Virus record (IMG/VR): IMGVR_UViG_3300022839_000006
Location: 62,001-126,000 of that record
Length of the DNA stretch: 64,000 bases
Reading direction: 5' to 3' (one strand)
The translations under genes and the position numbers were made by a program. The stretch's first letter is position 1. Every line of letters starts with the position of its first letter. The notes below the pieces were generated by a model. That model ran no database searches and was not told the origin of the DNA. It saw nothing but the letters and a program-made list of their open reading frames with translations. Below are positions 2,230-61,200 of the stretch, in pieces.

Positions 2230-2301
2230 TAGGTTGTACTGACTTGTTAAAGGAAGAGGACAACGTGCAATTACGCATGCTGATTACAAAAGGACTAAAA
2301 C

Positions 2302-3246: not shown

Positions 3247-3276
3247 CAAATAACGACACAGTGTCAGGAGACAGCC

Positions 3277-3624
3277 GTGAACATTTTCAACTGGATCAAA
3301 TCACTCTTCCAAAACCCTGTAGTGGCTCAACCAATTGATGGGCATGTGGTCTTTGATGGAAGACGTATTGCATGTCTTCCATCAAAGACAGCAGCGGAAG
3401 AATTCATTCGAAATCAATTCCAAGAGGTCGATGTCAAAACGGCCCGTATAAATCTAACTGCCAGAGGCAAATGTCGATCCACTCAGGATGGAAGATGGAA
3501 GGCGTTTAGAAGCAATCTGAAATTGTCAAACAGGAGACGTCAAGATGAAAAAAGAGTTCAAACCAGTAGTGGGTGGACGAGCCAGCATCTGCACATGGGA
3601 AATAGAATTTTATTTCCTAGATAA
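3277..3624 (+). CDS. hypothetical protein
   Basis: GTG start after AGGAG; 3' end overlaps the next ORF, so the end is uncertain. Confidence 0.5.
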   Translation: MNIFNWIKSLFQNPVVAQPIDGHVVFDGRRIACLPSKTAAEEFIRNQFQEVDVKTARINLTARGKCRSTQDGRWKAFRSNLKLSNRRRQDEKRVQTSSGWTSQHLHMGNRILFPR

Positions 3625-3802
3625 ACAGCAAGCGAGATCATTCATCAAACTTCTAATCAAAGACGAAATTGATTTTTCGTTTGAATATGAAAAAGTTCTT
3701 GATCAAGCTGACGAACGGCACTATGTTACAGTAACTGGCTGCTGGGCGGCAAACATGGTTCGGGTTGCTCAGATGGCAGAAGAAGTTGACTATGTTGGAT
3801 AA
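3545..3802 (+). CDS. hypothetical protein
   Basis: 85-aa ORF in a run of co-oriented small genes. Confidence 0.65.
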   Translation: MKKEFKPVVGGRASICTWEIEFYFLDKQQARSFIKLLIKDEIDFSFEYEKVLDQADERHYVTVTGCWAANMVRVAQMAEEVDYVG

Positions 3803-3820
3803 CCAAAAAGGAATATAAAC

Positions 3821-3988
3821 ATGAACAAGGATGCAAAACAGCTGGCCAGAGATATTTATCTACAGGCTCTTAGTAACGCGGCGGGCTTGGCCGATCTTAC
3901 CCAGGAGGTAAGAATACAAATGCTTCAAGAGGCTGCTCAAATATGTATTGATGCTGCTGATGTATTTTACGAAGCAATTGGTGAGTAA
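3821..3988 (+). CDS. small hypothetical protein (55 aa, not in ORF track)
   Basis: Read by eye: MNKDAKQLARDIYLQ...FYEAIGE*; AAGGA SD upstream. Confidence 0.6.
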   Translation: MNKDAKQLARDIYLQALSNAAGLADLTQEVRIQMLQEAAQICIDAADVFYEAIGE

Positions 3989-4141
3989 GAATCATCAAAA
4001 AAATCTGGTGCAATTGGCCAATAAATTATGGCACATACAATCTGAAAGCATGGCACGAAATTGCCAGAGGTGTCGTGTTTCTTCCTCTGGTAATTATAGC
4101 ATTCGCCCTGCTCTACTTTTCAGTGTGTTTGATGACAGGCA

Positions 4142-4480
4142 GTGCTGAAGCTGAACGAATTAGAAAAGATGTGCAGTGACATGATCAAAACAACAAATGG
4201 ACTAAAACGAAATCACGTAGTTGAAGATGTTAATAGTACATCTGGTTTCTGGCCTGCTAGAATCTGGCGAATATTGGACAGCGAGCATGTGATCACAATT
4301 TGCACAGGCCTTCATGTAAAAAAGATGCACGTCTCTGAATTGAGAAAGTCAGAGTATACCGGTAGGTGGATGAGCAATCGCAGCATCCGCGAAAAGACAC
4401 ACTTTCTGGGGATGACTAGACTGAGAGGATTAATTAAAGGCGCTCGGCATTATAATCCCGAACTGATCCCAGAAGAATGA
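4142..4480 (+). CDS. hypothetical protein
   Basis: 112-aa ORF, start uncertain. Confidence 0.5.
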   Translation: MLKLNELEKMCSDMIKTTNGLKRNHVVEDVNSTSGFWPARIWRILDSEHVITICTGLHVKKMHVSELRKSEYTGRWMSNRSIREKTHFLGMTRLRGLIKGARHYNPELIPEE

Positions 4481-19624: not shown

Positions 19625-19693
19625 TGACCTTATAGTCAATGGGCATATAGTGCAAGAAGTACAAAAATAACACAAGATCAGTCGAGGATAAAA

Positions 19694-21154
19694 ATGTGTA
19701 CAAATAACGAGCTGGTCGCACTTGCAACAAAAATTGTCAAGTTGATAGGGAACGCTAAACAACACAAGGACAAGGTCCTACAAAATATTGATTCTGATCT
19801 ACACGCACGTTTTGTAGAGTCGACAAGCTTCATGCCTGAGGATACCAAACTCTCACAGAGAGTTGCACATGGCCTGACAGGAATCGATCGTATGTTGATA
19901 TGCGTTGTATGTGGTAACACACACATGAGAATATACCCTCCTTCCCAAAGAGATTATTGTTGTAAAGGGTGCTACTTTTCAGACACAAAAGCAATGAAGC
20001 AACGCGTAAGTGTTGTAGATCAAACTGCACGTGTGAAGAAGATGGCACACACCAACAAAGTAAAGTACGGATACGAATTTAATAGTCAAAGACCCGACGT
20101 CAAAAAACTGTTGAGCAAATCTAAATTGGAACGTACCAATCCCGAGGCTGTAGACAGGCTCGCAGATAAGCTGTGGCTTGAAGAACAATACGCTAAACAA
20201 ACCTCCGTTGAAATTTCAAACACTCTAAACGTGCATTACAGCACTGTTCTTTTCCACTTGAGAAAACATGGGATAGAAATAACACCATATGCAAACACGA
20301 GTGCGGTTGAACGTAGTATAAACCAATTCATACTTGACAGTGGTGCACGAACAACAACGTCCACTCGTAACATTCTCACAGGCAACAGAGAGATCGACAT
20401 CTATGTCCCTGAAAAACACCTCGCAATTGAAGTTAATGGGCTATATTGGCATAGTAGCACAGATTTCACCAATTCGGCCAAGCACTTAACCAAGACGGAG
20501 GAGTGTTTGAGTAACGGGATTCGGCTCATACACATATCTGACGAAAAGTGGTTCACGAAGCCAGATGTTGTAAAGTCTATGCTGTTGAATAGACTCGGCA
20601 TGTCTCAGACACGAATACATGCAAGACAATGTACGGTCAGGTCTGTAGATCCGTCTACATCCAACGAATTTATTAACAGAAACCACATCAATGGCACAGC
20701 AAACGCAAACAAGAAGTATGGTCTATATCACAATGATGTGTTGGTATTGGTAATGACGTTTAGTAAATCACGGTATTCTAAGATGCACGAGTGGGAGTTA
20801 ATAAGGTTGTGTTCTGCTCACAATACGGTTATTGTAGGAGGAGCATCTAAAGTATTTCAACACTTCATTAGAGAGCAGTCGCCTATCAGCATTATGACTT
20901 ATGCTGATAGGCAATATGGAGAGGGACACGCATATCCAAAACTTGGCTTTAAATTTTCTCACATTACCAAGCCAGGATATTCCTGGACAGATGGCAATAA
21001 AACTTACAATAGAATCAACTTTCAAAAACACAAACTCCACAAACTACTAGATGTCTATAGTGACAGCCTGACAGAAAGAGAAAACATGATTAACAACGGA
21101 TATCGTTTATATTTCGATTGCGGTCACAATGTTTATGAGTGGAGCCAACAATAA
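19694..21154 (+). mobile_element. Hef-like free-standing homing endonuclease (Vsr/DUF559-type nuclease plus C-terminal GNAT/Mom-like region)
   Basis: CxxC zinc motif, HTH-like segment, EIDIY.P...LAIE.NGLYWHS, GIRLIHI, then NH..G, WELIRLC, GGASK, TYADR. Confidence 0.78.
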
Positions 21155-27755: not shown

Positions 27756-29621
27756 TCAGAACTGTTGACCGACAATTTCGTCAAATTCGACACCAGTTCT
27801 AGTTGCAACAAATGTCAGTTCGATGAAGTTGATTGATCTTGCAGGTTTGATAAAGATATTCGAGCGGAATTTATTGGCATCAATAACGTCAGCCGTGTTT
27901 ACCGTAGCATCAGAAACAACACGATAGTCGATAATGCCGCGACGGCCTTGAATATCACGGAGGAACGGATCCACAATCTGGCGGAATTGGTTCTGTGTGA
28001 ACTCATCATTGAACTCGAAAAGGAATTGTGCAGAAATTGTTGCAATTGCCTTTTCTACTGTAATGAATAGACGACGTACGTTAATCCGCGTGAATGCACT
28101 TCCAGTTGCGGTGCCTAGACCTGTCTTGTCGCCGAATAGAATTGTCCCCTGACCTGATTGTGCAATCACTGGGTTAACATCACGGCCGTAAAGTTGATCA
28201 CGCTGTGCTTTAGTTGGATTGAATGCAAGCTTGATAACATTGCGTACCCGTCCCTTACGGTAACCAGCTGGTGATTCCCACGATTCGACACGAGCACAAA
28301 GGCCTGCCATATCACCGTTTAGTGGAGTCCAGCGATACTGGTCATTGTACTTATCATAACGGTACTTATAACCACTGTCCATAAACCAATATGACGAATT
28401 CTGCATGGACGTTCTAAAGCCTATAACATTGTTCATTTTGTCCTGTTCGGAAGCAACACCAACAACATCAGTAATTTCTGGCGATATAAATGCAATGCAA
28501 TCTTTACGATATTCAGCAACATTTGAAACGATGTAGTTTGCAAGGTTAGAACCACTTACTGCTTTGCCTTGGAGAAGAAAGGAAATATCAATGTCATTTG
28601 CTTCTCTGTATAGGTCATAACCGAAAGCAATTGTACCAAGCGATACTAGGCTTTCTGATAGACTGTCGACACCAAGTGCAAAGGTCAGATATTCACGCTG
28701 CGCGGTAACAACACCAGTAGTAACGTCACCAATATTATCTTCGCCTGCTTCAATGTATGCAGATCTTTCTTCGATGTACGATCTATAAAAGATGTTCGTG
28801 CCGTCAGTTGTTTTAGTACCAGATTTAATTGCTAGGTTTTCAAACTTTTCAAGTATTTGACCAGCAGTGCCTGATACCAAGCCTGTTCTGTCAGTTACAA
28901 TGATGTGCATCTTACTAGCTTCTGGAGCTTCACCGAACGCGTCGGCATACGCCCAACGGCGCGTAACATCAGTAGGAATGTTCACCATTGTGAATCGCTC
29001 TCTAAAGATGAACGAGTGCACATATTCAAATTCAGAACCAGAAGTCGGTGTGGTGCTAAGAGTTTCAAGAGCAAGGATTTCCATGTCCTGGTAACCACTT
29101 GACGTGTCAATGCGTAGAACATCGCCTATCTTTACATTAATATCAACAAGAGCTTGGTCTGTTGTTATATCTAATGTTTGCTCTCTGAATGTGATGTCAT
29201 ATGTAGTTGCAATGCTAAACACATCTTCTGCGAAGCCACTTTCACCAATTTCGGATGTGGTGATATATGAAATTTCAATGCCGTTTGCGATGGTACCTGG
29301 GTATTTCGCCTTAAAAACAACATCGTCTGCTATATTTGAAACAGTTGCTGTACTAGCAGTATCATCTACTACACGGGTCACGTATAGAGCATTTGAATAC
29401 GAGAGGTAATCAGCAGCGGTAAAGAATGTTTCCGCATTGTGATCTGTAGGTTGGCCGAAAACATTAGCAAGTTCTATTTCTGAAGAGATTAGAACTCTTT
29501 CGTTTACAGGACCCCAGCGGAACACACCTGCGATTGCAGCTGGTAGCGTGGTGATTGCGGGAATTGTGGTAGTAAGATCAACTTCTCTTACCGTTACTGA
29601 TGGACTTACAGAAAAAACCAT
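27756..29621 (-). CDS. gp18: tail sheath protein
   Basis: SPSV.VRE.DLT, YDKYND.YRW.PLNGD.AG, RINVRRLF, FIKPARSINFI.L.FVATRTG. Confidence 0.98.
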   Translation of the reverse strand: MVFSVSPSVTVREVDLTTTIPAITTLPAAIAGVFRWGPVNERVLISSEIELANVFGQPTDHNAETFFTAADYLSYSNALYVTRVVDDTASTATVSNIADDVVFKAKYPGTIANGIEISYITTSEIGESGFAEDVFSIATTYDITFREQTLDITTDQALVDINVKIGDVLRIDTSSGYQDMEILALETLSTTPTSGSEFEYVHSFIFRERFTMVNIPTDVTRRWAYADAFGEAPEASKMHIIVTDRTGLVSGTAGQILEKFENLAIKSGTKTTDGTNIFYRSYIEERSAYIEAGEDNIGDVTTGVVTAQREYLTFALGVDSLSESLVSLGTIAFGYDLYREANDIDISFLLQGKAVSGSNLANYIVSNVAEYRKDCIAFISPEITDVVGVASEQDKMNNVIGFRTSMQNSSYWFMDSGYKYRYDKYNDQYRWTPLNGDMAGLCARVESWESPAGYRKGRVRNVIKLAFNPTKAQRDQLYGRDVNPVIAQSGQGTILFGDKTGLGTATGSAFTRINVRRLFITVEKAIATISAQFLFEFNDEFTQNQFRQIVDPFLRDIQGRRGIIDYRVVSDATVNTADVIDANKFRSNIFIKPARSINFIELTFVATRTGVEFDEIVGQQF

Positions 29622-29705
29622 TTGTTTTGTTCTCCTTTGACATAATAGCTTTATTGAACTAGTTTCACTTTAATCCTATTTATTATAATTGAGTTCTCAC
29701 ACAAT

Positions 29706-30851
29706 CTAGAGCCAGCTGTTGTACCGTACAGGCATATCATCTTCTTCTAGCTCGTCACCTATACTTACAAAGCCGAAAGGGAGTAATTCTTCCTCTATTT
29801 GTTCTTCGCTCTTTTCACGCAATTTCATCATTGTGTTGATGTCAGTCAGGTCTTTGAAGTAACCTTGATCAGTTAACCACGAAAACAGAACCAGGGTCAT
29901 AACAAGATCATCGTGTGAGCCAGATTCTGCCTCATATGATAGACCCTTCTTAGAGAATTTGGAAAGCTCTTGAATGGTGTTGAAATCTGGAACGAGCAAT
30001 TGGTTCTGCTCGATTAACATTTTTAGAATTGAACAGCCGATAGATTTTACTGATTTTGTTGTTCTGATACCTCGATCTACATTCTTACCAAAACCGCCAG
30101 AGACTCTTTTTCCCGACCGGCCTCCATTTTCTGTCATGACAAGATTTTCATATCCATAGTCAAGGAAAAGAATGTCTGATACCTGACCACCTATGTCATT
30201 GACCTCGACCATAACATGTGCTTCATTATAAAGCGTCGCAACTCTAAATATAGTAGCGGCATAATCAACAGGGCCAGTAAAATTATCTCTAAATGTACAC
30301 ACTTGCTTGTACGGCATTTGAGTTATGTCCAGAACAGAGAAAGCAGAATAATCCAAACCTTTGCCACGAGAAACATCAACTACCATTGCATATGTATGAC
30401 CAGTAACAACAGGGTCATACTGAAGCAGGCCCTCACTTTGAGTCACTGGTTTTGAATGTGCCATTTCTTTGAGTTTCTGTCCTGCGATCAAAGTACCAGA
30501 GCTGCCAAGGAATTCGCAGTTATGAGATACCATATTATTAGTATAATATTTGTGGCCGTTGCTCACTTCAAGCGCGTCGTATACATCCGCAGTTTCATTC
30601 TTATCTATAGAAAGAGTTGCTACTCTCGAATAGCCGCTCTTCGTTTTCAATCTCGATCCTATATATAAATTCTGCGCTTGTATAAACCCTGCTTCAGTCT
30701 CTATTTTATGATCCAGCGTACATTCTAATAGATTGCCGATTTCATCTACAATGGTTACTATACCGGTAGTGGTTTTTTTATACACACCGTGAAAATCCGC
30801 CCATCCACTGTCCGTTAGTATTTCATACTGGGTGTTGTTCTTTTTCGTCAT
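29706..30851 (-). CDS. gp17: terminase large subunit C-extein (nuclease domain) preceded by split-intein IntC
   Basis: ...VSHN/CEFLGSSGTLI junction; VDVSRGKGLDYSAF, EVNDIG, HDDLVM. Confidence 0.95.
   Translation of the reverse strand: MTKKNNTQYEILTDSGWADFHGVYKKTTTGIVTIVDEIGNLLECTLDHKIETEAGFIQAQNLYIGSRLKTKSGYSRVATLSIDKNETADVYDALEVSNGHKYYTNNMVSHNCEFLGSSGTLIAGQKLKEMAHSKPVTQSEGLLQYDPVVTGHTYAMVVDVSRGKGLDYSAFSVLDITQMPYKQVCTFRDNFTGPVDYAATIFRVATLYNEAHVMVEVNDIGGQVSDILFLDYGYENLVMTENGGRSGKRVSGGFGKNVDRGIRTTKSVKSIGCSILKMLIEQNQLLVPDFNTIQELSKFSKKGLSYEAESGSHDDLVMTLVLFSWLTDQGYFKDLTDINTMMKLREKSEEQIEEELLPFGFVSIGDELEEDDMPVRYNSWL
30519..30851 (-). mobile_element. split intein C-fragment (111 aa)
   Basis: Block B LECTLDH (TxxH), block F VYD..EV, block G SHN followed by Cys+1. 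Confidence 0.92.
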
Positions 30852-31035
30852 GGTAGGTCCTTTGTGGGAATGCCTTTTCTCTATGGTGTTGTTCTTATAG
30901 CAGCCGGCACCACATCACATGTTTCAGCGCGCCACAGAACGAGAAGCGGACTTCTCGTTAAATCTCCTTTATTCTTTCTTCTGGAGTCGTTCGCCGCGAT
31001 TTGTACACGTGTGTTTTCTCATCTCCATCCTATTT

Positions 31036-31043
31036 TATTTATA
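31036..31043 (-). promoter_or_regulatory. T4-type late promoter between the two terL halves
   Basis: Exact TATAAATA 11 nt after the N-half stop. Confidence 0.8.
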
Positions 31044-31054
31044 AATCAAGGAAT

Positions 31055-31942
31055 TCACAAGTGCAAATTTTCATAAAGTTCTTCTATGAAGATCGTTTTT
31101 ATCTCGCCTGTTTCTTTGTCTCTTATGGTGATTTGAGTGTTGCCCTTCACGCAGCAATATTCTTGCGCAAACTTGTCTTGGTCGTGATCAAGAGCTTCGA
31201 GAGTTTCCTGTTTCCAAGCTTCACCTCTGCCTGGGACATCATTCCACATAACACGTACAAACTCATATCCGTTGGTGCCTTCCTCTGCACCTTTACAGGT
31301 TTTCCAATAGTGGTTAATGCCATTTGGAGTTGAAGTCATTAATAATTTTGTTGTCTCGCCGGACGAAATTGTAGGATAAACAGAGGCGAAGAATTCATCG
31401 TACCCTTCGATAAACGCGACCTCGTCGAGATACAGAAACGAGATTGACTTGCCTCGAATTGCACTTGATGACGTAGTGCCTGCATATATCTTACAACCGT
31501 TTTCTAATTCTATAGAGCCTTTGTTCCACTCCTCTACGCCTTGCTGTAGCCACCTAGGGAGCGCCTCGTACGCAAGCTGAATTCTATTGAGAACTTCTCT
31601 TGCAGAGTCACCTTTATTTGCAAGGATTGCTGCTGTCTTATATTCGTTAAATAGAATATAGTGTAGAATCACGGCTGCGGCAGTTGTGGTTTTGCCACTT
31701 TGCCTTGCTGTCAACACCGCAACTCTTCTATTATCTGTAATTTTACGGACAATTTCCTCTTGGTAACCGTACATTTCAAACGGTATAAGCCCTTTGTCTA
31801 CGTGCACAATTTTTATATATGTCTTGGCAAAATATACCGGATCGTTGGCACATTTCATGTACTCTTGTAGTAATTCCGGCGTCCATTCAATTGCGGTACC
31901 AGACTTCTTGAGGTGTTGGTTTCCAAGATAACCTTCTGTCAT
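31055..31942 (-). CDS. gp17: terminase large subunit N-extein (ATPase domain) plus IntN
   Basis: YLGN..LK, RQSGKTT Walker A, YLDE.AF Walker B, STPNG. Confidence 0.96.
   Translation of the reverse strand: MTEGYLGNQHLKKSGTAIEWTPELLQEYMKCANDPVYFAKTYIKIVHVDKGLIPFEMYGYQEEIVRKITDNRRVAVLTARQSGKTTTAAAVILHYILFNEYKTAAILANKGDSAREVLNRIQLAYEALPRWLQQGVEEWNKGSIELENGCKIYAGTTSSSAIRGKSISFLYLDEVAFIEGYDEFFASVYPTISSGETTKLLMTSTPNGINHYWKTCKGAEEGTNGYEFVRVMWNDVPGRGEAWKQETLEALDHDQDKFAQEYCCVKGNTQITIRDKETGEIKTIFIEELYENLHL
31058..31153 (-). mobile_element. split intein N-fragment (32 aa)
   Basis: Block A CVKGNTQITIRD...IEELY directly after extein FAQEYC, then stop. Confidence 0.9.
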
Positions 31943-31991
31943 TATAATGCCTGCAGCGATCTTATAATATGTTCTGAGTTACAGCATTTCA

Positions 31992-32462
31992 TTAGGTTTC
32001 ACCTTTCATCATCCTCAACAGGTCAGCAGTAGATATTATCAAATTGTTATTTGTAACATTCGTCTGAGCTTGTTCTTTAGATCCAGTTAGTTCTTCTCTT
32101 TGATACTTTTTCTTCATAGACATATCTACAAAGTCTTTGTTTGCATCAAGAAGCGTTTTCATCAGGCCGGATGCAACTTCAAACGCTCTTGGAGACTCTG
32201 ATTGCTTAGCAAGCTCAATCATTTCTTTAAGAGATTCGTCGCCCTTCTCTATAATATTTTTGATGTTTGATCTTGCCTGTTCGATGTCTCTATATGTCTC
32301 GTCCGCTTCTACATTGACAGGAACCACTATGTTGGAGGTGTCATCAATCAATATAGGCAGTACGTCTGAGTCGTCAGTAGGTGCGGAGCGCTCGTCAGCT
32401 AGAGCATCACCCATTGGCCTTAGTCCAAGTGCAGCATCTATTGGGTTCTCATTCATCTTCAT
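31992..32462 (-). CDS. gp16: terminase small subunit
   Basis: ELAKQSESPRAFEV, NVTNNNL..STADL. Confidence 0.92.
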   Translation of the reverse strand: MKMNENPIDAALGLRPMGDALADERSAPTDDSDVLPILIDDTSNIVVPVNVEADETYRDIEQARSNIKNIIEKGDESLKEMIELAKQSESPRAFEVASGLMKTLLDANKDFVDMSMKKKYQREELTGSKEQAQTNVTNNNLIISTADLLRMMKGET

Positions 32463-33249
32463 AGTCCTTCACCAATGGCACCACACCCCAGTCGTCATCG
32501 ATATTTATTTCATCGTATGCAATTGTTTCGTTGATGTCGGTAGTAGGTGCGCCTGCAACTGTCAGTCCTGGTTGGACTGTTACCTGACCAGAAGTTGCAA
32601 CTTCTGGTGTTACGTCGTTGTGTGTTCTAACATCGACAAATTTTACAACACCACGAGATCTCTCCGGACCAAAAAACCAACCCTTCATTGTAAATGAAAG
32701 TGTCCACATGAGCGAACGTCTCGTTTCGAAGTCTGCTTCATATAGGTCTTCTAGGGAAACAGAATTTAATATCAAAGGAATATCAATTGCTGGGAGATCG
32801 TCAATAATTCTTGCGCTAAACGTGTATTCTGGCTTGAAGAACGGAAGCAATTGTTCCAAGATTTTTGTGCCATCCTCTGCGTGCTTGGTCATAATGTAAA
32901 GAGTAAATTCTAAATTGTACGGAGCAGGAGAATACATGAACGTAGTGTCGGTTGAAGTTGATCTCAGTTTATTCAACGAATTGGTTTTACGCTGACCATC
33001 AAAAGACATGGAATTAATTTCAAACGCCATGCGAGGAAGTGATATTGCTTGTGGTCGATTCAGTCCTGGATCTTGTGTTACTCTAGCAAGAAATTTCTGG
33101 AACGGGCCATAGGCAATAGGTACTACCATAAATTGCTCTTCTTCATTGCCATTATTATCTCTTGTAACAGAGATTTTATTAAAAAGAGATCCAAATAATG
33201 CAATGTAACGGCGAGTAGAACCGTTATAGAAGTGATTTACAATTGACAT
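32449..33249 (-). CDS. gp15: tail sheath stabiliser/terminator
   Basis: FY....R.Y...FG.LFN, VP.AYGP.QKFL.R, LPRM.FE, QLLPFF.P. Confidence 0.95.
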   Translation of the reverse strand: MSIVNHFYNGSTRRYIALFGSLFNKISVTRDNNGNEEEQFMVVPIAYGPFQKFLARVTQDPGLNRPQAISLPRMAFEINSMSFDGQRKTNSLNKLRSTSTDTTFMYSPAPYNLEFTLYIMTKHAEDGTKILEQLLPFFKPEYTFSARIIDDLPAIDIPLILNSVSLEDLYEADFETRRSLMWTLSFTMKGWFFGPERSRGVVKFVDVRTHNDVTPEVATSGQVTVQPGLTVAGAPTTDINETIAYDEINIDDDWGVVPLVKDYEDE

Positions 33250-37424: not shown

Positions 37425-40141
37425 TATCTAAAAACCCTTGTATCATTATGTGTTACGGATACTGTATTTTCTTTTTCAACTGTTTGTGACTCGACTGGCT
37501 GCTCTGTCTTTTCGACCACAGCAATTTGCTCATTCAATTTGAAGGTGTGATTTCCTATGTGTTCGCACTTAATCGAAGTGTCTGCCCAAATCTTAAATCC
37601 TAGGTCTCTTGCTTTTTTGCAAAAGTAAACGTCCTCAGAAACGGTGTTGATATGTTCAAGAGCTGACGTGTAATAAAAATGTGGGTATTCCATTGTGCGT
37701 ATTACATTTGCTTTTACTAGACATGCACCGAAACCACATCCAGCAATTTCAACAACACCTCTGTCTTTGAGCATCTCGTAAGGAATGTTAGTCATACCGC
37801 CAGACGGCGTGTCCATATACAATTCAACTGTATGGGTATTTGTGATTCGTTGTATGTACAATCCAGAGATTACATCCACATCAGCAGACAACATTCTTAC
37901 GAGTGCATCTTCAGGTAGTACTATATCACTGTCTACCGAAAAGAGATAATCATATCTCTTTGTCCATTCAGCAATTAAATTTCGAATCTGGTCGATTTGA
38001 TATCCATAAGCATACTGAAAGTCTACTTTGTATCCTTCTGGGACGGTCATATTATATATTGACTTCATAGTTTCAGGCTCTATGTATCTATTAGTTGGTA
38101 TTGCTAATAGTATTGTTTTCACTGTTGCATCCTTTTTATCTTTTTCGTATGAAAGATTGGCATTTTTATTCTGCTCGTCTCCACTTACCTTATAATCATT
38201 GAGTGGGTTTGCATCGTTATAATTGCAGACTATTTCCTTATTACAATAGATCTTTTCTGGTTCTATTCTTTCTATCAGTTCATAGAAAAGAGGGTTGTCG
38301 TGCCCTGATTTCATCCACTCTCCATTCACTTTGAATTTTTCGACATCAAGAGTGGGAAAATATTCTCCCAAGCATGTCCTGAGATGCGTATACGGAATTT
38401 TCCAGTTGAAGTGATGATCTCTATAAGATCTCGTTTTCTTTACTTCAATGGGATAATCTTGAGCTATCAGAGGTATGTTATCTGCAACGGACCACATTGA
38501 CCCGTAAGTAAATTCATAGCCCTGACCATAAAGGTCGTTGTAGTAATGGAAGATTGTATTGTTATTTATAAGCCAATCGTCACCGTCTAACAACATCACA
38601 ATGTCGTCTGGTTTGCAACCACTCACCGCTTTGATCTGATTTGCGATGGCACCTTCATTTTCTTCATTTCTAATCAACTGAAATTTTGATTTTAGATTGT
38701 GTGAAAGAGAGTTGATTGTCTGTTGTGCTATTTCGAACGAGTTGTCGTCCGAGCAATCGTCAATTAAAATGTGTGTATAGTTGTCATAATCCTGCTGGGC
38801 AATTGAAAGAATATTCTTCTGAATGTACTTTTCAGCGTTCCAAAACGGAGATATTACTGAAATTCTTTTCTGGTTGTTGAACGATCTATACTCTTTTCTG
38901 ACTGGCATTTCGCTAGTTCTTCCGAACACGCGAGAAACCTTGTCGTTGATGCGAGTGACATTTTGATAGTCTTCAACGGAGAGAAACTCGTCATTGATCT
39001 TATATAAGAATTGCTTCCATTGAAGAGCAACTGTATCCCATCCGTAAACATCCTTGATGACATCGCAGTAATTTTGCTTCTGTTGATGAGCATATGGGTT
39101 ATTATAGGCATTAAAGAATGTAGCAAGAAACTTTTTAACCTGTTCTTCTTTGTTGATGTGAGGAAAAAGATTGTTAGGCTCAATTGCATAATCAATTTGA
39201 TAGCACGCAAGATCAATTGCTGTTTCTTCAAGTGCGCCAAATCGTGTTGTTACGATAGGAGTTCTATACAGTAGAGATTCAAGCGACGATATGCCGAATG
39301 TTTCTGGGAAAGCACCTGGGTACAGCATCATATATGCGTTTGCAAGTATTCCTGCAATTTCGTGCTGAGGGATTACCCCAGTAAATGTGACACCTAAATC
39401 TTTTAGATCTTGACTGTTTGTTAGTTCAGAAACTGTATTTTCCTGAGCATCAGGCTCGGCACCTTCTCTGAAACGGTAATACCCACCGATAATGGTCAAC
39501 CTTGCTTCTGGGATATGTTTCTTAATCTCTGGCCAAATATGTTGTACTAGAGGCAACATTCCCTTAGTTGCAGATGCATTGTAAACAAAATGGTTCTTGT
39601 CTTTTTTTGATATGTCAACTTCAGGAATGTGACAGACAGCGCCGTTGCGAGTTTGAAAGATTGACTTCTTGAGAACTTCATAATTTCTCTTTTTACCGTG
39701 TGCGCAAGTAAGAATATACGAGGTGTGCCAATCAGAAAGAGTAAATATGTGGTCAATTTTACCAGAAATTACAAGGTCTTCTACCAGCTGATCGCCTTCT
39801 ATAAAGGTATCATGAAGCCAGAGTAACCTCTTGTTAGCAGTATGTATGAATGGGTAGTCGTTATTTACAAATGGCTCGACAGTTCTCGAAACTATGACCG
39901 AATCGTAGGTTTCATTGTGCGACTTTGCATCTTTGTTGTCGATGTATCGAACGTTATCATACGTACCAGCTTGAGAACGGGAAGAGTCATCACAGTTGTT
40001 AAAAACCGTGACGTGAAACCCTAGTTCTGCTAGTTCTTTTGAAATCAGTGTTACAGCGGACTCTGAGCCCCCAAGACCTTGTTTTGATAGTGTAGTGCCA
40101 TCATAACATAAGCCGATCTTGTCAATAAGTGCTATTTTCAT
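37424..40141 (-). CDS. three-domain glycosyltransferase (GT4-like GT-B + GT2 + GT2-like GT-A)
   Basis: GLGGSE and YP..FPETFGISSLE (GT4); ISVI.P..N...IDDCS.D and LDGDD (GT2); VDSDI, GCGFG, SED.YFC, CEHIG (GT-A). Confidence 0.9.
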   Translation of the reverse strand: MKIALIDKIGLCYDGTTLSKQGLGGSESAVTLISKELAELGFHVTVFNNCDDSSRSQAGTYDNVRYIDNKDAKSHNETYDSVIVSRTVEPFVNNDYPFIHTANKRLLWLHDTFIEGDQLVEDLVISGKIDHIFTLSDWHTSYILTCAHGKKRNYEVLKKSIFQTRNGAVCHIPEVDISKKDKNHFVYNASATKGMLPLVQHIWPEIKKHIPEARLTIIGGYYRFREGAEPDAQENTVSELTNSQDLKDLGVTFTGVIPQHEIAGILANAYMMLYPGAFPETFGISSLESLLYRTPIVTTRFGALEETAIDLACYQIDYAIEPNNLFPHINKEEQVKKFLATFFNAYNNPYAHQQKQNYCDVIKDVYGWDTVALQWKQFLYKINDEFLSVEDYQNVTRINDKVSRVFGRTSEMPVRKEYRSFNNQKRISVISPFWNAEKYIQKNILSIAQQDYDNYTHILIDDCSDDNSFEIAQQTINSLSHNLKSKFQLIRNEENEGAIANQIKAVSGCKPDDIVMLLDGDDWLINNNTIFHYYNDLYGQGYEFTYGSMWSVADNIPLIAQDYPIEVKKTRSYRDHHFNWKIPYTHLRTCLGEYFPTLDVEKFKVNGEWMKSGHDNPLFYELIERIEPEKIYCNKEIVCNYNDANPLNDYKVSGDEQNKNANLSYEKDKKDATVKTILLAIPTNRYIEPETMKSIYNMTVPEGYKVDFQYAYGYQIDQIRNLIAEWTKRYDYLFSVDSDIVLPEDALVRMLSADVDVISGLYIQRITNTHTVELYMDTPSGGMTNIPYEMLKDRGVVEIAGCGFGACLVKANVIRTMEYPHFYYTSALEHINTVSEDVYFCKKARDLGFKIWADTSIKCEHIGNHTFKLNEQIAVVEKTEQPVESQTVEKENTVSVTHNDTRVFR

Positions 40142-40175: not shown

Positions 40176-41936
40176 TTATTTATCCTTGCTCAATTTCCTT
40201 ACCGCGTCAACCAATATTGCAATCAGAGGTATGTAAGAGACCGACTTGACACCATTTTCGTTTGTTGTTACTAAATCTGGCACAATCTGCTCTAGTTCTT
40301 GTGCAATAACACCGTAGCTTTTCTTCTTGTTGTCTTTCCAATTAAAGGAGTATGTGCCAATTTGATTAATAATACCAAGACTGTCTATATCAGAATTGAA
40401 ATTCTCTTTATAATTTGCATCAGATAGAGAGTTAAATTCAGTAGCATTTAATGTGCCAGTTGAAGGATTAAAATACAATTTATCTGAAGCAACGTATACT
40501 ACCTGCGCAACTCCGCTACTAGATCCAACGAAACCTAAAAATCTGGTTGCATCAGTAGTTTCGTTGGTTATAGTAATACTTGAACCTTCTGCAGCAGGAC
40601 CTTGACTTCCGGTAAATCCTAAGTCACCTTTGGATCCGGTAAATCCTGCCCCTTGTGAGCCGACATAGCCAGTGTCACCTTTGGATCCGGTAAATCCTAC
40701 GTCACCTTTGGATCCAGTAAACCCAGCTGTGCCTTGACTTCCAGTAAAACCAAAGTCTCCCTTGGAACCAACAAAGCCAGTATCACCTCGACTGCCAGTG
40801 TAACCAATTGAACCTGCATAGCCTAGGTCACCTTTGGATCCAACAAAACCAGTAAATCCTAGTGACCCGGTGTAACCAATTGAACCAGCATAACCCAAAT
40901 CGCCTTTGGACCCAGCATATCCTACGTCACCTTGCGATCCAGAATAACCCAAAACACCTTTACTGCCAGTAAATCCAAAAGATCCAGTGTATCCTACATC
41001 GCCTTTGGATCCAGAATAACCAGTTGTACCTTGACTTCCGACATAACCAATTGAACCAGCATAACCCAAATCACCTTTGGATCCATCAAAACCAGTTGTA
41101 CCTTGGCTACCGACATAACCAATCGAACCGACATAACCCAAATCGCCTTTGGATCCATCAAAACCAGTTGTACCTTGGCTACCAGTAAATCCTTGCGACC
41201 CAGTGTAACCAATCGAACCGACATAACCCAAATCGCCTTTGGATCCATCAAAACCAGTTGTACCTTGGCTACCAGTAAATCCTGCCCCTTGGGAACCAGC
41301 ATAACCCAAATCGCCTTTGGACCCATCAAAACCAGTTGTACCTTGGCTACCAGTAAATCCTAGCGACCCAGTGTAACCAATCGACCCAGTAAACCCTAGT
41401 TGGCCGCGCGACCCAGAAAAGCCTATCAAGCCCTGTGATCCTGCGAAACCTATACTGCCCTGTGATCCTGCGAAACCTATACTGCCCTGCGAACCCGCGT
41501 ATCCCCGAGAACCTATATCGCCTTTCGAACCTGTGAAGCCGAGAGGACCTGTGAAGCCAGTCTCGCCTTTTGAGCCTGTAAAGCCAACAGAGGCGGCCTC
41601 TCCTGCTACACCTTGAATGCCTTGGGACCCAGAAAAGCCTAACGAACCAGTGTAACCCAGTTCGCCTTGGGATCCTGCAAAGCCAAGTGATCCAGTAAAG
41701 CCGAGAGAACCTGTGAAGCCTATCTCGCCTTTTGAGCCTGTATAGCCAACAGCAGCATATGCGCCCGCTACACCTTGAGATCCAGTAAAACCTCTACTAC
41801 CAGAAAAGCCACTGTTGCCTTTAGATCCGTCAAAGCCGCTGGTGCCCTGTGAACCTGTGTACCCTCTATTTCCTACAGTATTTACTGCTATTCTAGGACC
41901 TACGGTGGTGCTAGGTATCACGATTAAATCGCTCAA
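40176..41936 (-). CDS. collagen-like fibre protein with C-terminal S74 intramolecular chaperone
   Basis: Long (G-F/Y-T/A/V/S/D-G-S-X)n run; SD..YKEN, YGVIAQELE..VP.LV, V.Y..L. Confidence 0.88.
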   Translation of the reverse strand: MSDLIVIPSTTVGPRIAVNTVGNRGYTGSQGTSGFDGSKGNSGFSGSRGFTGSQGVAGAYAAVGYTGSKGEIGFTGSLGFTGSLGFAGSQGELGYTGSLGFSGSQGIQGVAGEAASVGFTGSKGETGFTGPLGFTGSKGDIGSRGYAGSQGSIGFAGSQGSIGFAGSQGLIGFSGSRGQLGFTGSIGYTGSLGFTGSQGTTGFDGSKGDLGYAGSQGAGFTGSQGTTGFDGSKGDLGYVGSIGYTGSQGFTGSQGTTGFDGSKGDLGYVGSIGYVGSQGTTGFDGSKGDLGYAGSIGYVGSQGTTGYSGSKGDVGYTGSFGFTGSKGVLGYSGSQGDVGYAGSKGDLGYAGSIGYTGSLGFTGFVGSKGDLGYAGSIGYTGSRGDTGFVGSKGDFGFTGSQGTAGFTGSKGDVGFTGSKGDTGYVGSQGAGFTGSKGDLGFTGSQGPAAEGSSITITNETTDATRFLGFVGSSSGVAQVVYVASDKLYFNPSTGTLNATEFNSLSDANYKENFNSDIDSLGIINQIGTYSFNWKDNKKKSYGVIAQELEQIVPDLVTTNENGVKSVSYIPLIAILVDAVRKLSKDK

Positions 41937-41940
41937 TTTC

Positions 41941-42279
41941 CTACTCCGGTCTTGTGATAGTTGGGATTATGTGGACAGTGCCTTCCAGTAACTTTTTCAC
42001 ATTTCCATTTTGATTGGTATAAATTACATCGTACTGGTATTTACCAGGTTCTAGATCGGCGGTCTTTTCAGCTCCAATGAAAATGTCTAAATCTACTGTT
42101 TCACCACCGCCATTTTCTTGTATTGTAACTGAGGCATCAAACAACTTAGCAGATGAATAAACTTTTCTTGCACTAGAGTAGAAAGCTAAACCTTCTGTGG
42201 TGTTTTCATCTAGTGTAATCTGAAGACGAAGTAGAAAATCAATTCCCTGATCTACATAGAGATTTGCTCTTGTTGTCAT
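41941..42279 (-). CDS. small structural protein (T4-like, ANL.VDQG.DF motif)
   Basis: RANLYVDQG.DF, T..L..GKY.YDV, LEG.V.I.P.IT. Confidence 0.75.
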   Translation of the reverse strand: MTTRANLYVDQGIDFLLRLQITLDENTTEGLAFYSSARKVYSSAKLFDASVTIQENGGGETVDLDIFIGAEKTADLEPGKYQYDVIYTNQNGNVKKLLEGTVHIIPTITRPE

Positions 42280-50052: not shown

Positions 50053-51980
50053 TAGAATATAGCCCCACCCACAACACACTTATTAGTATCAACAAACAAC
50101 ACAGTACATATTCCTCTTGTAGCTAAGGTAACAGAAGACACGTTGGTATTTACACCGGATATATATGCAGTAGCAACAGAGCATGTAATTGTTGCATTTC
50201 CTGTAGTATCGTTATAGATGGTAATTACATCGCCAGGCGAAAACACGCTATTTGGAATTGTAATACTTCCACCAGTTCCTATCGAAACGTATTCGCCTTT
50301 GTCTGCAATCGCTAAGGTATATGATGTCGTTTTATCTGTGCCTGCACTTGGTACTGTATTTACACCTTGCGAGCCTGTAAAGCCGATGGACCCCTGTGAA
50401 CCTGCAAAGCCTGTAGAGCCTGTATTACCGCTTGAGCCTTGAGAACCTGAAAATCCACGAGAACCTGTGAAGCCTGCAACAGTACTTGCCTCACCTGCAG
50501 GTCCCTGAGATCCGGAAAACCCACGAGAACCTGTAAAGCCTGTATCAGCTACAGCTCCTTCTATTCCTTGTGCACCACGGGAACCTGTAAAACCTATATC
50601 GCCTTTTGAACCTGTATAACCAATTGCGTCAGCTGCGCCCGGAATACCTTGCGAGCCTGTATACCCAAGATCGCCCCCAGATCCTGTATAACCAATTGTG
50701 CCGAAAGAACCTTGCTCTCCTTGAGAGCCAGTGTATCCGATTGCTTCTGCTGCCCCAGGGACACCTTGCGAACCTGTATAACCAACTGCGTCAGCTGCGC
50801 CTGGAATACCACGGGAACCTGTAAAACCTACATCGCCTTTCGATCCTGTATAACCAATTGCATCAGCTGCGCCTGGAACACCTTGTGAACCAGTAAAGCC
50901 GATGTTGCCCCTAGATCCATCATATCCTGTGCCAGCAGAGCCTGTAAATCCAACAGGGCCCTGGTTTCCGACGTTGGCATAAAGCTGCCAAGTAGATCCG
51001 TCCCATGCAAAATCTACACGGACATTAGGAAGATCAATAACAAGGTCTTGAGCAGAACCTTCAATTGTGTTGCCATTGCCATCTACAATTAAGTTGAAAG
51101 TCTGAAAACTACTTCCGTCTGCAATCGTTATGACACTGCCTTCTTCTGGGTTGAGAGGAAAAAATATCGTAAATGTGCCGCCGCTAGTATCTGCAATAAT
51201 ACCATCTTGGTTGATCGCTGTGTAGTTTGATGTCTTTCTTGCCCAATTAAGAGTAGCATTCAGTCCAGCAGATCCTGTAAAGCCAAAAGATCCTGCAAAT
51301 CCCTGTGAGCCTGTGAAGCCACGGGAGCCATCATATCCACGAGATCCTGTAAAACCAATAGCACCGAAAGATCCAACAGATCCTGTAAAGCCTTGAGAGC
51401 CAGTAAAGCCAAACGAACCAGTGAAACCACGAGATCCTGTAAAACCACGAGATCCTGTAAAACCACGAGATCCTGAAAAGCCCCGAGATCCATCAAATCC
51501 TGTTGAGCCTGAGAAACCTTGTGAACCTGTGTATCCAAACGAGCCCGTATAGCCAATAGAACCTGTAAAACCGGTTGGGCCCAAGATAGGTCCTATCACG
51601 TTGAATTCAGATCCGTTCCACACGTAAAGAATTGCTTCATCTTCTACAAAGTATGCTGTGTTTGTCTCGTTGCCTACAGTAGGAAGGTCATTGGCAGTGG
51701 GTACTGCGTCTTCGAACGTAAAGCCCTCTCCTCTTTCGCCGCGAGAACCTGTGAAACCACGAGAACCTGTAAAACCAAACGAACCTGTGAAGCCGCGGGA
51801 ACCTGTGAAACCAGAACTAACAGGCAGCCAAATATATCCATCCGATGCGTAAATTACATCATCATCGCCATAAACCATTGCTCCACGGTATACGGCCGGG
51901 TCCAGACCGATCGGTGTTGGTTGAGGCAACCCGTGTGACAGAAGCTGCGTTCTACCTCGTGTTGTTTTAAACGACATCAT
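50052..51980 (-). CDS. collagen-like fibre protein with interspersed beta domains
   Basis: GFTGSR/Q repeats alternating with globular inserts (ADTSGG.FTI..P..P, LATRG.CT.LF). Confidence 0.85.
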   Translation of the reverse strand: MMSFKTTRGRTQLLSHGLPQPTPIGLDPAVYRGAMVYGDDDVIYASDGYIWLPVSSGFTGSRGFTGSFGFTGSRGFTGSRGERGEGFTFEDAVPTANDLPTVGNETNTAYFVEDEAILYVWNGSEFNVIGPILGPTGFTGSIGYTGSFGYTGSQGFSGSTGFDGSRGFSGSRGFTGSRGFTGSRGFTGSFGFTGSQGFTGSVGSFGAIGFTGSRGYDGSRGFTGSQGFAGSFGFTGSAGLNATLNWARKTSNYTAINQDGIIADTSGGTFTIFFPLNPEEGSVITIADGSSFQTFNLIVDGNGNTIEGSAQDLVIDLPNVRVDFAWDGSTWQLYANVGNQGPVGFTGSAGTGYDGSRGNIGFTGSQGVPGAADAIGYTGSKGDVGFTGSRGIPGAADAVGYTGSQGVPGAAEAIGYTGSQGEQGSFGTIGYTGSGGDLGYTGSQGIPGAADAIGYTGSKGDIGFTGSRGAQGIEGAVADTGFTGSRGFSGSQGPAGEASTVAGFTGSRGFSGSQGSSGNTGSTGFAGSQGSIGFTGSQGVNTVPSAGTDKTTSYTLAIADKGEYVSIGTGGSITIPNSVFSPGDVITIYNDTTGNATITCSVATAYISGVNTNVSSVTLATRGICTVLFVDTNKCVVGGAIF

Positions 51981-52413
51981 CTTGCTCCGCTTGTCCTACG
52001 GTATATGAAATTGTTATGTCGATTGCACCATTGACAGATGCAAGAACATCCAACGTATCTCCCCTAAAGATGAACTGACCGTTCAGTGGAATTGGTATCA
52101 TGTCATTTACTGGAATCGGCACATCCTTCATAACAAAGAAATATGTCCCTGTATTGTTGCCCAAGTCTTCTTGATTTTCTCTGTAGATGCGAATACTCAC
52201 TGTTGCGGTTGCTGCTGAAAAGTTAGAAATAAGAAGAGGGCTGATAATTTCCCCGACGCCAGGAACAATATCAACTCCGCCACCGAATGACTGTTGCGGA
52301 ACTTCGTATGAAGGAACTTCAATAATTGAAACCCAGTCTGTAGTAAGTGTTGTACTAAAAGCAACGGGTTTCGCGTCTGGAGCTTGACTTGTGATAATTA
52401 GCTGTGTTGTCAT
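51967..52413 (-). CDS. small structural protein
   Basis: Beta-rich 148 aa, overlapping both neighbours. Confidence 0.7.
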   Translation of the reverse strand: MTTQLIITSQAPDAKPVAFSTTLTTDWVSIIEVPSYEVPQQSFGGGVDIVPGVGEIISPLLISNFSAATATVSIRIYRENQEDLGNNTGTYFFVMKDVPIPVNDMIPIPLNGQFIFRGDTLDVLASVNGAIDITISYTVGQAEQDDVV

Positions 52414-58223: not shown

Positions 58224-61200
58224 TGGAAGGAAATCCCTCTATAATCTAGTACCTTTGGCACTCGAGCAACATCGTCCGAAAGTAAATCAATCCGAATCGA
58301 GAACGATCTAAACGAATAGTATGTGCCAGTGGAATTTGTATATGTTGTAATGCCAGCGAGTTTTTCTGTTTCTGGTATTTCAAATACAAATTCCTTATAA
58401 TCATTCACGTTTGATGTGCTAGAGAATAGTGTAGAACCTTCAATTTTGTCCAATTCGAACCATTCGTTGTTACGCAACGAAACAGGGTCATCGCCATTCT
58501 TTACTTTCAGGTAAACCTTAATGTCAGAACCTATCGGTCTGTATCCTGTGAGATACAATCTAAAGTCTTCTGCATCAAATCCTTCTTGTAATTCCACTCT
58601 TTTGGATATGTACTTAGAAGTAGTTTCGACAGTGTCTGTTATATTATAGACATATGCAAATATCTTGGCAGTTTCAATGTCAACAAGCGGGGTGGTTGTT
58701 GCAATGGAATCTTTCTCAAGTGTGAGAACTACACGCAAGTTCTTGTCGTTTGTGATATCATTTGATTTACTATAAACAACACAACCCTTTTCGTTGAATG
58801 CTTTTTTGTCTGCAAAGCTGAACTCACTTGTATAAGCAGCATTTCCAGGCGCAGCAGGGTCTATCGCCTTCACTGCAGTTCTAACATTCGTATTTGTGTC
58901 AGTTATTCTATTGACCATAGCCTGTATGTAGCTCAATTCAATGTTATCAACTGAAACAATTGAAGCAGTTGCTCCGCTATCAATGCCGTATATAATCCCA
59001 GCAGATGCAAATATTCTTGTGTCTCTTGCAGACGAATCTTCAAGAACTAAGAAGTCTGGCTTTCTGGTATTAAAATAATTGATTTTTCCTGCAACTACTG
59101 GTCTTGAATTTATGGTACCTGCAAACTTTGGAAGCTTGTCTACAATAATTTGGGTAGAATTTGTGACAGATACGACCCGCAGAAGATCTTTTTCTCCTGA
59201 AGTGTGTTCAACATACACATAATCGCCTGCGCTGTAATTATTTAGAGCAGAACCTGTAACTACATTTGTTGTTACGTTGAGAACTAACTGATATGTGGTA
59301 CCTGCCGCAGCAGTGAACACGTATGCAAGTTCGTTGTTAGCAAATCCACCTACAGTATTTTGAATGGAGAAGAATTCTGCGTTATCAGTTTCTAATTCGA
59401 CAGTACCCTGGTCAACATTGAAGTTGTAGCGATAAAGATCAAACCTGATATCCTCATCCTGATACGAGTTCCATGAGCGGTTGTTTGTCGACGTAAACAG
59501 AACACCGTCACCCCAATCCGAATTTACAGCAGTTCCTGTTAAGAGGTCAGTGCCTCCTACTTTCTGTGTAAAGATTAGGTAGTCTGGGTCTGCTGCGTCT
59601 GGCATTACAACTATTGCGTATTCTTTTTCGGTGTCTAGTCTTACAGGAGCCTCGAAGATTATAGAAGTTACGACTGATGCGTCATTGGATATGTTCACTT
59701 GGGATGCTCTTAGGTGTATCTTTGAAAAAGGAAGTATTTCAAAGCTAGGATATCCGTTTTCTACTTCTCTTATCATCACAGTAATGCCATTAGTGGCACT
59801 TTTTCTGCTAAAGTAAAGATCGAGTCTTCCTAGGTATAGGCAATCCGCCCCTTGTGTCATGGTATCTTTAACAAAGAAGGTCTGTGCGAGAGGATCTCTT
59901 GGTGGGTCGCGGTCATCTCTTTCGCTTCTTTGTATTACCGGTGGAACTGGCGGTATGTTTCTTATAGTAACCGAGTTTGTGGTCGTGACAGAGCGCGTGC
60001 TCTTAATGTCAAACTCTGGTTTTCTTGTAGACATCGTTAGCCCAGTTTTTTCAATGCTGAAGTTATATGCGTTGAATTTCAGTCTTCCTGCTGATGCAGC
60101 AGCGCTTTCTATATCTTCGAATGTGCCGACGTCTGCAATTACTAATTCTCTTTCGCCAATGATAAACGTATTGCCTGGGATTTTAAATATAGCAAACAAT
60201 TCTCCGTTACTGTTTGTTGTAACGGAGGTTCCAAATTTTCCTGCTCTACGGACTCTATCACCTGAAGTTGCTCCAGAGATATCACTGCGTAGCGTTCCAG
60301 GCGCAATGAAGTCATCTACAATTTTTTCGTCAAAGAAGAAGAAGTGTTGCGTGTTCGGTCTTAGACCATACATTTCGACAGAAAGCTCAATCGATTTGAT
60401 GTAAGGCTTGTATTGGAAATTGGTAACAAAGTCGCCTACAAATTCCTCTTGTGCAGGTCCACTAGCAACATTTAATTCTTTAAATATGTTTTTGAATGTG
60501 TCGGTTGTAGTAGTTGTAATCTGCCTACCTGCCGCAGCATTTCCAGTTTCAGACACCTTGTTCGTCGATTTGATCTTTTTCTTTTTCGAGGACGTGAGAG
60601 GCACGAATTCGCTTATTGCCTCAGCAAATTCAGCAAATGGCGACACAAGATCGATTGCGTATGTCTTTGGAGTCGTTACAGTGTCATACGCAACATCGTA
60701 TTCTGGGGTAAGGTAACCAGTGCCTTTGTAGCTATAGAAATTGCTTGTACAGGTTCTAACATTTGTTGCATACTGCTGTCTCAAAAACCGAACATACTGG
60801 TTTGAACTTAGCGTAGCAGTTTTGTTGTCTACATCAAACGATTGGGTATCAGTAAATCCTTTCACCTTCAAGTTCAAAGGGAATTGTCTAAAGCTTGGGT
60901 ATAGAGCATTTTCAGTAAAGTCAACAGAAGAGTTGAATGTGGGATCGCTGACGTCAGCAATTGACAGGTCGTTAAACGGATCCACTACGATTCCATTTTT
61001 AAATCTGTTCAAGCCGTTTTCATCTTGAATTAGCAAATCACGTGTTGCATTTTCTAGCGCAGTAAGCTGCGTGTAGTATGTGATTTGATCAAGTTGCGAA
61101 GAAATTTTATCAATGTCTTGCATAGTGTATGTTTTTGTAGTTTTTCTCGTGAGCTGCAACGTCTCGTTTCTGCGACCCAATCTTGCAGCAAGTTCAGAGG

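Follow-up and report, generated by a model that had tools for sequence, protein, structure and literature searches.

The 64,000-nucleotide (nt) stretch of DNA analysed here, referred to as the window, corresponds to positions 62,001 to 126,000 of IMG/VR virus record IMGVR_UViG_3300022839_000006 and carries the terminase large subunit (TerL) of an uncultured T4-like phage from a salt lake. This TerL is encoded by two adjacent genes on the minus strand, an N-half of 295 amino acids (aa) and a C-half of 381 aa, and it is very probably fractured into these two late genes by a class 1 trans-splicing intein that is broken at the S2 site, as judged from sequence comparisons and structure models.

The fractured TerL gene and the identity of the intein

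An earlier note on this DNA had described an ATPase gene ending in FAQEYC followed by a 32-aa N-terminal intein fragment (IntN), a gap of about 200 nt, and a second gene opening with 111 aa (the C-terminal intein fragment, IntC) that contain TxxH, VYD and SHN and precede CEFLGSSGTLI. The coordinates and the sequence of the first gene hold, with both genes on the minus strand, the gap measures 203 nt, and all the motifs of the second gene are present, TLDH at IntC residues 45-48, VYD at 90-92 and SHN at 109-111, with CEFLGSSGTLI coming next. The N-half matches Pfam Terminase_6N (E 1.8e-24) and the C-half matches Terminase_6C plus a HINT domain below threshold. The N-extein is similar to the T4 gp17 structures 3EZK, 2O0H and 3CPE (E about 1e-62), and the C-extein to the RB49 and T4 gp17 nuclease domain (E 1e-39 and 5e-36). 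As extrapolated from the alignments with these gp17 structures, the junction between the two exteins lies at the ATPase/nuclease hinge, near residue 354 of T4 gp17.

In a search of the PDB sequences, IntC matched five solved inteins, the best being 6DSL_B (CatC) with an E-value of 1.6e-5, or 8.8e-8 when 10 extein residues were added. The same search with IntN alone gave only spurious matches to repeat proteins and is uninformative because the peptide is too short. In the alignment of 102 family members, two residues never vary (His48 and Asn111) and five are nearly invariant (Thr13, Gly16, Phe20, Asp92 and Val96), and the IntC of the window keeps every one of them. The class 1 residue set is complete, comprising C1, T45-L-D-H48, D92, H110-N111 and C+1. 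The AlphaFold model of IntC reached a predicted local distance difference test (pLDDT) value of 94.6, and the top 50 matches found by Foldseek in the PDB were all inteins or HINT domains, with template modelling (TM) scores of 0.64-0.82. The highest TM-scores were obtained with 6DSL_B (0.82/0.77, root-mean-square deviation 2.1 Å, 30% identity), and the best match by E-value was gp41-1. By homology and predicted fold, IntN and IntC are thus assigned to a class 1 HINT-type intein.

To define the splice junction, 80 related IMG/VR loci were surveyed, of which 79 have a readable junction. The counterpart of N-extein residue 263 directly abuts C-extein residue 1 in 72 of these 79, and among the 72 uninterrupted loci the junction is Cys-Cys in 48 and exactly QEYC-CEFLGSSGT in 23. 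Since these loci are collinear with the exteins and carry no intein at this junction, removing the 32 + 111 aa restores the commonest native sequence, in line with the QEYC-CEFLGS junction put forward in the earlier note. The cysteines that the note had pointed out at -1 and +1 are both present, but the one at -1 is merely the native extein residue of this TerL clade. It should be noted that the residue preceding CV[KH]G varies among the other split loci, being N, A, C or E, which fixes the N-terminal boundary of the intein.

The break lies in the loop between helix α1 and strand β3

Contiguous mini-inteins of the same family occupy the same TerL site in other phages, and in these proteins the N-terminal 30-45 residues run directly into the IntC-like part. 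The IntN and IntC of the window together tile such inteins with nothing missing. Compared with the contiguous P0020 intein, IntN shares 56% identity with the opening 34 residues, and IntC shares 38% with all that follows. In the model of the P0020 intein (pLDDT 96.4), residues 7-12 and 18-22 are strands, 23-30 form a helix and 31-35 a loop, and another strand follows at 36-40. IntN aligns with its residues 1-30, and these form β1, β2 and helix α1. The end of IntN falls two residues past the helix, the conserved YEILT of IntC corresponds to the next strand, and the first strand in the model of IntC begins at residue 10. On these alignments and models, the break is placed in the loop after helix α1 and before β3, the "S2" site. 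AceL-TerL and GOS-TerL are split at S2, after α1, and VidaL and PolB16 at S1 (PMC13014065). The proposal that the locus is an atypical short-IntN split of the AceL/GOS-TerL type is thereby supported by the fragment lengths (32/111 aa), by the S2 break and by CatC being the best solved relative. Concerning the insertion point, comparison with AceL and GOS is indirect: the Cat construct has C-E at +1/+2, as here, and the GOS locus of Dassa et al. (2009) is gp17-like.

Independent assemblies and selection on the two halves

The sequence-bearing runs are salt-lake metagenomes. The locus of the window is identical in two IMG/VR contigs, one of which is 208 kb long. A Logan contig from another sample and another study, assembled independently, covers positions 29300-32500 with 21 substitutions and no indel. 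In this second population the stop codon, the start codon and the 203-nt spacer between the halves are as in the window, the spacer differing by two substitutions. The prospect that further sequence would reveal a single contiguous intein open reading frame (ORF), which the earlier note named as a possible refutation, is therefore not borne out by the independent assemblies.

Among the listed differences between the two lake populations, all 14 in the exteins are synonymous (6/6 in the N-extein and 8/8 in the C-extein). IntN shows no difference, and IntC shows one synonymous and two non-synonymous differences (V108I and T79N), which are conservative or at non-conserved sites. The shared layout, the exclusively synonymous extein changes and the lack of indels indicate that the split gene is maintained by selection in at least two populations. 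To judge from these substitutions, both halves of the gene are under purifying selection and the locus is functional rather than decaying.

A spacer without an endonuclease gene

In the nearest split relatives (L003/L004, L005 and L006), the spacer is about 740 nt long and holds a free-standing gene for a 233-aa GIY-YIG homing endonuclease. The spacer of the window contains no ORF of 60 aa or more, and a search for a GIY-YIG remnant by blastn, tblastn and Smith-Waterman alignment with shuffles against the genes of the relatives found only its first 27 nt to be homologous. A AAGGAGATT match deeper in the spacer was considered as an endonuclease remnant and rejected as not significant, 19-35 of 300 shuffles scoring equally. 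The conserved box at 31031-31056 is 23/26 to 25/27 identical to the box found 5' of the endonuclease gene in L003, L005 and L006, and the remaining ~180 nt have no significant similarity to the endonuclease genes of the relatives. The T4-type late-promoter consensus within this box, TATAAATA, occurs 15 times in the window against 2.7 expected occurrences; 13 copies belong to the coding strand, and most of these precede a long ORF by 29-142 nt. In the tree of IntC sequences, the window groups with L003 and L005 with a Shimodaira-Hasegawa-like approximate likelihood ratio test (SH-aLRT) value of 85. From these comparisons we infer, as the most economical reading, that the endonuclease has been lost and that its promoter box would now serve the C-half.

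Other lineages also have no endonuclease in the spacer, namely L059 (spacer of about 120 nt) and L084 (18 nt). The same split layout is found in L003-L006, L059 and L084, these related phages breaking at the same point with different spacers. In the extein tree, split alleles fall at two or three places among uninterrupted ones, and the nearest TerL neighbours of the window are uninterrupted. Such a patchy distribution of split alleles in the tree is what a mobile element would be expected to produce. Most of the intein tree (102 rows, 112 columns) lacks resolution, and it supports no count of splitting events.

No Rfam family was found in the locus at a permissive threshold or in the whole window, and an intron or riboswitch in the spacer was rejected on this basis. 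The RNA fold of the spacer is ordinary (z -1.3), and the terminator-like matches of the scanner are all inside coding sequences, with none in the spacer.

Elsewhere in the window, a 508-aa ORF (19628-21151, plus strand) lies convergent to the gene for the major capsid protein; it has a match to PHROG 3339 "homing endonuclease" (E 9e-105) and a weak one to Pfam REase_MTES_1575. This protein is 37% identical to the product of an ORF located after the split TerL C-half in L084. A free-standing endonuclease-like gene thus exists in this phage, outside the TerL spacer.

Proposed mechanism and alternative explanations

On the basis of established intein chemistry, we infer the following mechanism. 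The two halves would be translated separately, the C-half having its own Shine-Dalgarno sequence and probably its own late promoter. The 32-aa IntN tail would then dock on the 111-aa IntC head to complete the HINT fold, and thioester formation at Cys1, attack by Cys+1, cyclisation of Asn111 and an S-to-N shift would release a 533-aa TerL reading ...QEYC-CEFLGSSG... at the ATPase/nuclease hinge. As to its origin, the break was probably made by a free-standing GIY-YIG gene in the region of the α1-β3 loop, which would have been lost later, leaving its promoter box behind. The separated domains of T4 gp17 keep their ATPase and nuclease activities yet are not known to reconstitute packaging, so covalent joining, or at least tight association, of the two halves would be necessary.

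Several observations speak against this scheme. IntC shares only about 28-30% identity with the characterised Cat consensus, so that homology does not vouch for activity. Both fragments, IntN and IntC, are mildly acidic and have no charge complementarity; canonical split inteins are known for electrostatic pairing of their fragments. The TATAAATA element lies 192 nt 5' of the ATG of the C-half, counted from the start of the motif, which is the second-longest such distance in the window after that of an intragenic motif at 38563-38570. Finally, the loss of the endonuclease is argued from a weakly supported node (SH-aLRT 85) and a shared box of 27 nt, and no coding remnant of an endonuclease is detectable in the spacer.

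If the intein pieces did not splice and acted only as a non-covalent clamp, TerL would be a two-chain enzyme. The lack of complementary charge is in keeping with such a clamp, and the fact that two of the three IntC differences between the populations are non-synonymous is compatible with relaxed constraint. However, the residues needed only for the chemistry (Cys1, T-x-x-H, Asp92, His110-Asn111 and Cys+1) are retained, including those that are invariant or nearly so across the 102 family members, and V108I and T79N both fall outside conserved positions. Because of this conservation, we consider a two-chain TerL improbable.

An interruption by a stop codon and a 203-nt non-coding spacer could also be taken as the sign of a decaying terminase pseudogene in a defective phage. 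This is very unlikely: all 14 extein substitutions are synonymous, no indels occur, the two ORFs are intact, a Shine-Dalgarno sequence precedes the C-half, and the architecture recurs in diverged relatives. In addition, no second TerL was seen in the ORF list of the window, where the flanking genes are annotated as other late proteins.

We regard as more remote still a repair at the level of RNA or translation (self-splicing intron, translational bypass or read-through) instead of protein splicing. T4-like phages are known for group I introns and for bypassing in gene 60, and the spacer does contain a perfect 9-bp hairpin. By contrast, Rfam is empty at this locus even when the threshold is permissive, group I introns are usually longer than 203 nt, every frame is closed by stops, and the coding sequences beside the spacer are complementary HINT parts that would still need protein splicing afterwards.

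Although the window derives from a metagenome assembly, a mis-assembly or sequencing error that split a contiguous intein ORF is barely conceivable, given the two identical IMG/VR contigs, the same 203-nt spacer in the Logan contig from another sample and study, and the related phages that share the break point with different spacers.

Comparison with known split inteins

The Cat intein (PDB 6DSL) is an engineered consensus of AceL-TerL and GOS-TerL, whose IntN/IntC lengths are 25/104 and 37/115 aa. The window intein resembles these inteins in its phage TerL host, in the combination of a short IntN with a long IntC and in the split after α1. It shares Cys1 and Cys+1 with AceL and Cat, the C-extein of Cat starting with C-E as here. 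CatC is the best solved match both by sequence and by TM-score over the whole length. On the other hand, the identity to Cat is low (about 28-30% for IntC), the fragment lengths differ, and, as a difference from AceL-TerL and GOS-TerL, the host of the window intein is a gp17-type TerL of a T4-like myophage. Both fragments fall within the range of the S2 TerL class, whose IntN measures about 25-37 aa and whose IntC measures about 104-122 aa.

The term "fractured gene" was used by Dassa et al. (2009, PMC2677866) for essential phage genes broken by a split intein with a free-standing homing endonuclease between the halves. These authors described a gp17 terminase locus from Lake Gatun fractured at an unusual point, with a C part of 122 aa, and TATAAATA elements 5' of the endonucleases. 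The window shares with these fractured genes the two adjacent genes, the split intein and TATAAATA in the intervening region; it differs from them by having no intervening endonuclease gene, whereas L003, L005 and L006 have one.

VidaL and PolB16 OarG are likewise naturally split with a short IntN, and the model of IntC matches VidaL with a TM-score of 0.79 although the sequence match is weak. However, both are split at S1, after β2, with an IntN of 15-16 aa (PMC13014065), and PolB16 sits in a DNA polymerase and is cysteine-independent. The canonical gp41-1 and Npu DnaE inteins have the same HINT fold and class 1 residues, but they are split at the usual endonuclease-insertion point into an IntN of about 90-120 aa and an IntC of about 35-50 aa, so that their fragment asymmetry is the reverse of that in the window.

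Related inteins in protein clusters and GenBank phages

A word-indexed protein search with IntC returned 3 proteins only. An exhaustive profile search with seven IntC sequences gave 4,299 cluster representatives at E ≤ 1e-3 and 1,055 at E ≤ 1e-10, and the best 152 of the 4,299 were looked at. Among these best 152 proteins, 62 open with an IntC-like domain; at least 25 of the 62 continue with the hinge-site extein (xF[L]GSSGTLI), and in the other IntC-first proteins the following extein belongs to the Walker A, Walker B or post-Walker B site of TerL. In 18 of the best 152 the IntC-like domain is internal at the hinge site, most of these being contiguous inteins. Eight further N-halves of ~295 aa end in an IntN of 30-32 aa. 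In GenBank, TerL contains an IntC-like stretch in 92 phage records (Campylobacter 44, Escherichia 14, Pseudomonas 13 and others), and many of the TerL-intein phages examined are split. None of the four GenBank records opened (Vibrio phages 1.244.A and VP-1, Shigella phage JK32 and Campylobacter phage CP30A) has an intein annotation. The earlier note had spoken of a rare class. With dozens of protein clusters and about 90 GenBank phage genomes this description does not stand, and the abundance of the family implies that the class is rare only among characterised inteins.

The two Vibrio phages, 1.244.A and VP-1, have a related intein family with the long IntC first and the same hinge site (CSF[LR]GSVGTLI), but there the IntN is fused in frame to a GIY-YIG endonuclease. 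VP-1 also has a contiguous mini-intein in its Walker A loop (SGK/C...SHN/TT), and its C piece seems to start further upstream than annotated, the tblastn match starting 141 nt earlier. In Shigella phage JK32 and Campylobacter phage CP30A, the family is again related, the C piece opens with a long IntC and the split is of S2 type; they differ by a site after Walker B, by the fusion of the JK32 IntN to a TnsA-like nuclease and by an N piece that is not adjacent in CP30A. The first JK32 coding sequence (CDS) contains an IntN-like peptide after Walker B (IYIDE/CVSG...) fused to a TnsA-like or endonuclease I-like domain, and the second opens with a long IntC ending in SHN/CAFIQNW, which on sequence suggests a further S2-type split intein, unannotated and at a different TerL site. 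In L086/L087 (P0002), the TerL C piece opens with IntC and the upstream gene encodes a 5'-3' exonuclease, not a TerL N piece; here and in CP30A, the TerL halves appear to be encoded far apart.

In three of the 18 proteins with an internal IntC-like domain, P0048, P0100 and P0102, about 90-330 residues of another domain precede the hinge-site IntC-like domain. That of P0100 ends in a '...VLVIWED' motif, which we take to be Vsr-like, and all three may be fusions of an endonuclease to IntC, which would mirror the IntN-endonuclease fusions of the Vibrio phages. Finally, L057 (100-234) has no hinge intein but an IntC-like stretch just upstream of N-extein residue 82, which suggests an intein at the Walker A site.

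The data fit a broader, tentative picture, which we find possible but taken as a whole rather doubtful. The S2-split inteins would form a large, mostly unannotated family found at four or more TerL sites (Walker A, Walker B, just after Walker B and the ATPase/nuclease hinge) in T4-like phages, Ackermannviridae and Campylobacter (Fletchervirus) phages. GIY-YIG or PD-(D/E)xK-type genes would settle in the α1-β3 loop and not at the canonical site, with endonucleases either free-standing or fused to either fragment. In the same picture, the window would be a post-endonuclease "fossil" that keeps the late promoter of the endonuclease, now driving the C-half, and the split would be locked in, a precise deletion being the only way to heal the gene.

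Significance of the locus

By sequence, the locus is best described as a diverged S2-split TerL intein of an already known family, in an endonuclease-less variant. Four characterised natural short-IntN split inteins are named in the cited literature: AceL-TerL, GOS-TerL, VidaL and PolB16. Split inteins of this kind serve in protein semisynthesis and labelling, where a short fragment has the advantage of being accessible to chemical synthesis. From a salt lake, the locus contributes a further natural pair that is diverged in sequence (32/111 aa, Cys1/Cys+1, with a native Cys at -1). This pair is a candidate tool for protein ligation, and the locus indicates that public data contain many other candidates. 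The sequence variation between its relatives reveals the parts kept by selection. The locus also illustrates how an essential phage gene can remain fractured once the selfish endonuclease that was the probable cause of the break has apparently disappeared. It changes no concept, and its IntN is not shorter than those already used.

Genomic context

The locus (Table 1) is embedded in a T4-like late module comprising gp13, gp14, gp15, the small terminase, the split TerL, sheath, tube, portal, protease, scaffold and the major capsid protein. A megablast search of the locus against GenBank phages gave no match, so the phage is without a close cultured relative; the nearest cultured TerL relatives are those of Sinorhizobium phages phiN3 and phiM12, with about 60% identity. 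Near-identical and identical copies of the TerL halves (P0001 / P0154) are recorded on a contig of 263,791 bp, and the genome of the phage may thus be larger than the 208-kb IMG/VR contig.

Table 1. Features of the fractured TerL locus (window coordinates) and of split TerL genes in cultured phages (coordinates of the respective records).
Feature	Coordinates	Strand	Description
N-half ORF	31055..31942	-	295 aa = 263-aa TerL ATPase part + 32-aa IntN; end ...FAQEYC/CVKGNT...ENLHL, then stop
N-extein	31154..31942	-	TerL (gp17-like) ATPase part, residues 1-263, end ...FAQEYC, Cys at -1; Pfam Terminase_6N
IntN	31058..31153	-	32 aa (CVKGNT...IEELYENLHL); Cys1 at 31151-31153; stop codon TGA at 31055-31057
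Spacer	30852..31054	-	203 nt between N-half and C-half ORFs; stops in all frames
Conserved box	31031..31056	-	GAATTCCTTGATTTATAAATAAAATA, including T4-type late-promoter consensus TATAAATA (31036-31043); starts inside IntN stop codon
Remaining spacer	30852..31030	-	no endonuclease gene; mini-ORF, hairpin, Shine-Dalgarno sequence
Spacer mini-ORF	30969-31028	-	19 codons
Spacer hairpin	30938-30959	-	perfect, 9-bp
Shine-Dalgarno sequence	30858-30862	-	AAGGA, 6 nt 5' of C-half ATG
C-half ORF	29706..30851	-	381 aa = 111-aa IntC + 270-aa TerL nuclease part
IntC	30519..30851	-	111 aa; block B T45-x-x-H48, block F D92, terminal H110-N111
C-extein	29706..30518	-	TerL nuclease part, 270 aa from Cys+1 (CEFLGSSGTLI), plus stop codon; Pfam Terminase_6C
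Vibrio phage VP-1, MH363700 (L081)	337-3679		Ackermannviridae TerL, hinge-site split
Vibrio phage 1.244.A, MG592609 (L082)	520-3670		Ackermannviridae TerL, hinge-site split
Shigella phage JK32, MK962753 (L083)	745-3856		gp17 of a cultured T4-like coliphage, annotated as two overlapping "terminase large subunit" CDS
Campylobacter phage CP30A (L088)	2998-4326		TerL C piece opening with IntC; upstream gene = neck protein

Further genes of the window were recorded in passing. A 904-aa protein encoded in the tail/baseplate block (37430-40141, minus strand) has GT1-type and GT2-type glycosyltransferase domains, and the TATAAATA motif at 38563-38570 lies inside its ORF. Two collagen-repeat proteins (40182-41966 and 50058-51995, both on the minus strand) are probably tail fibres, the first of them ending in a Peptidase_S74 intramolecular chaperone domain. 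A 1,821-aa DUF4815 protein is encoded at 58226-63688.

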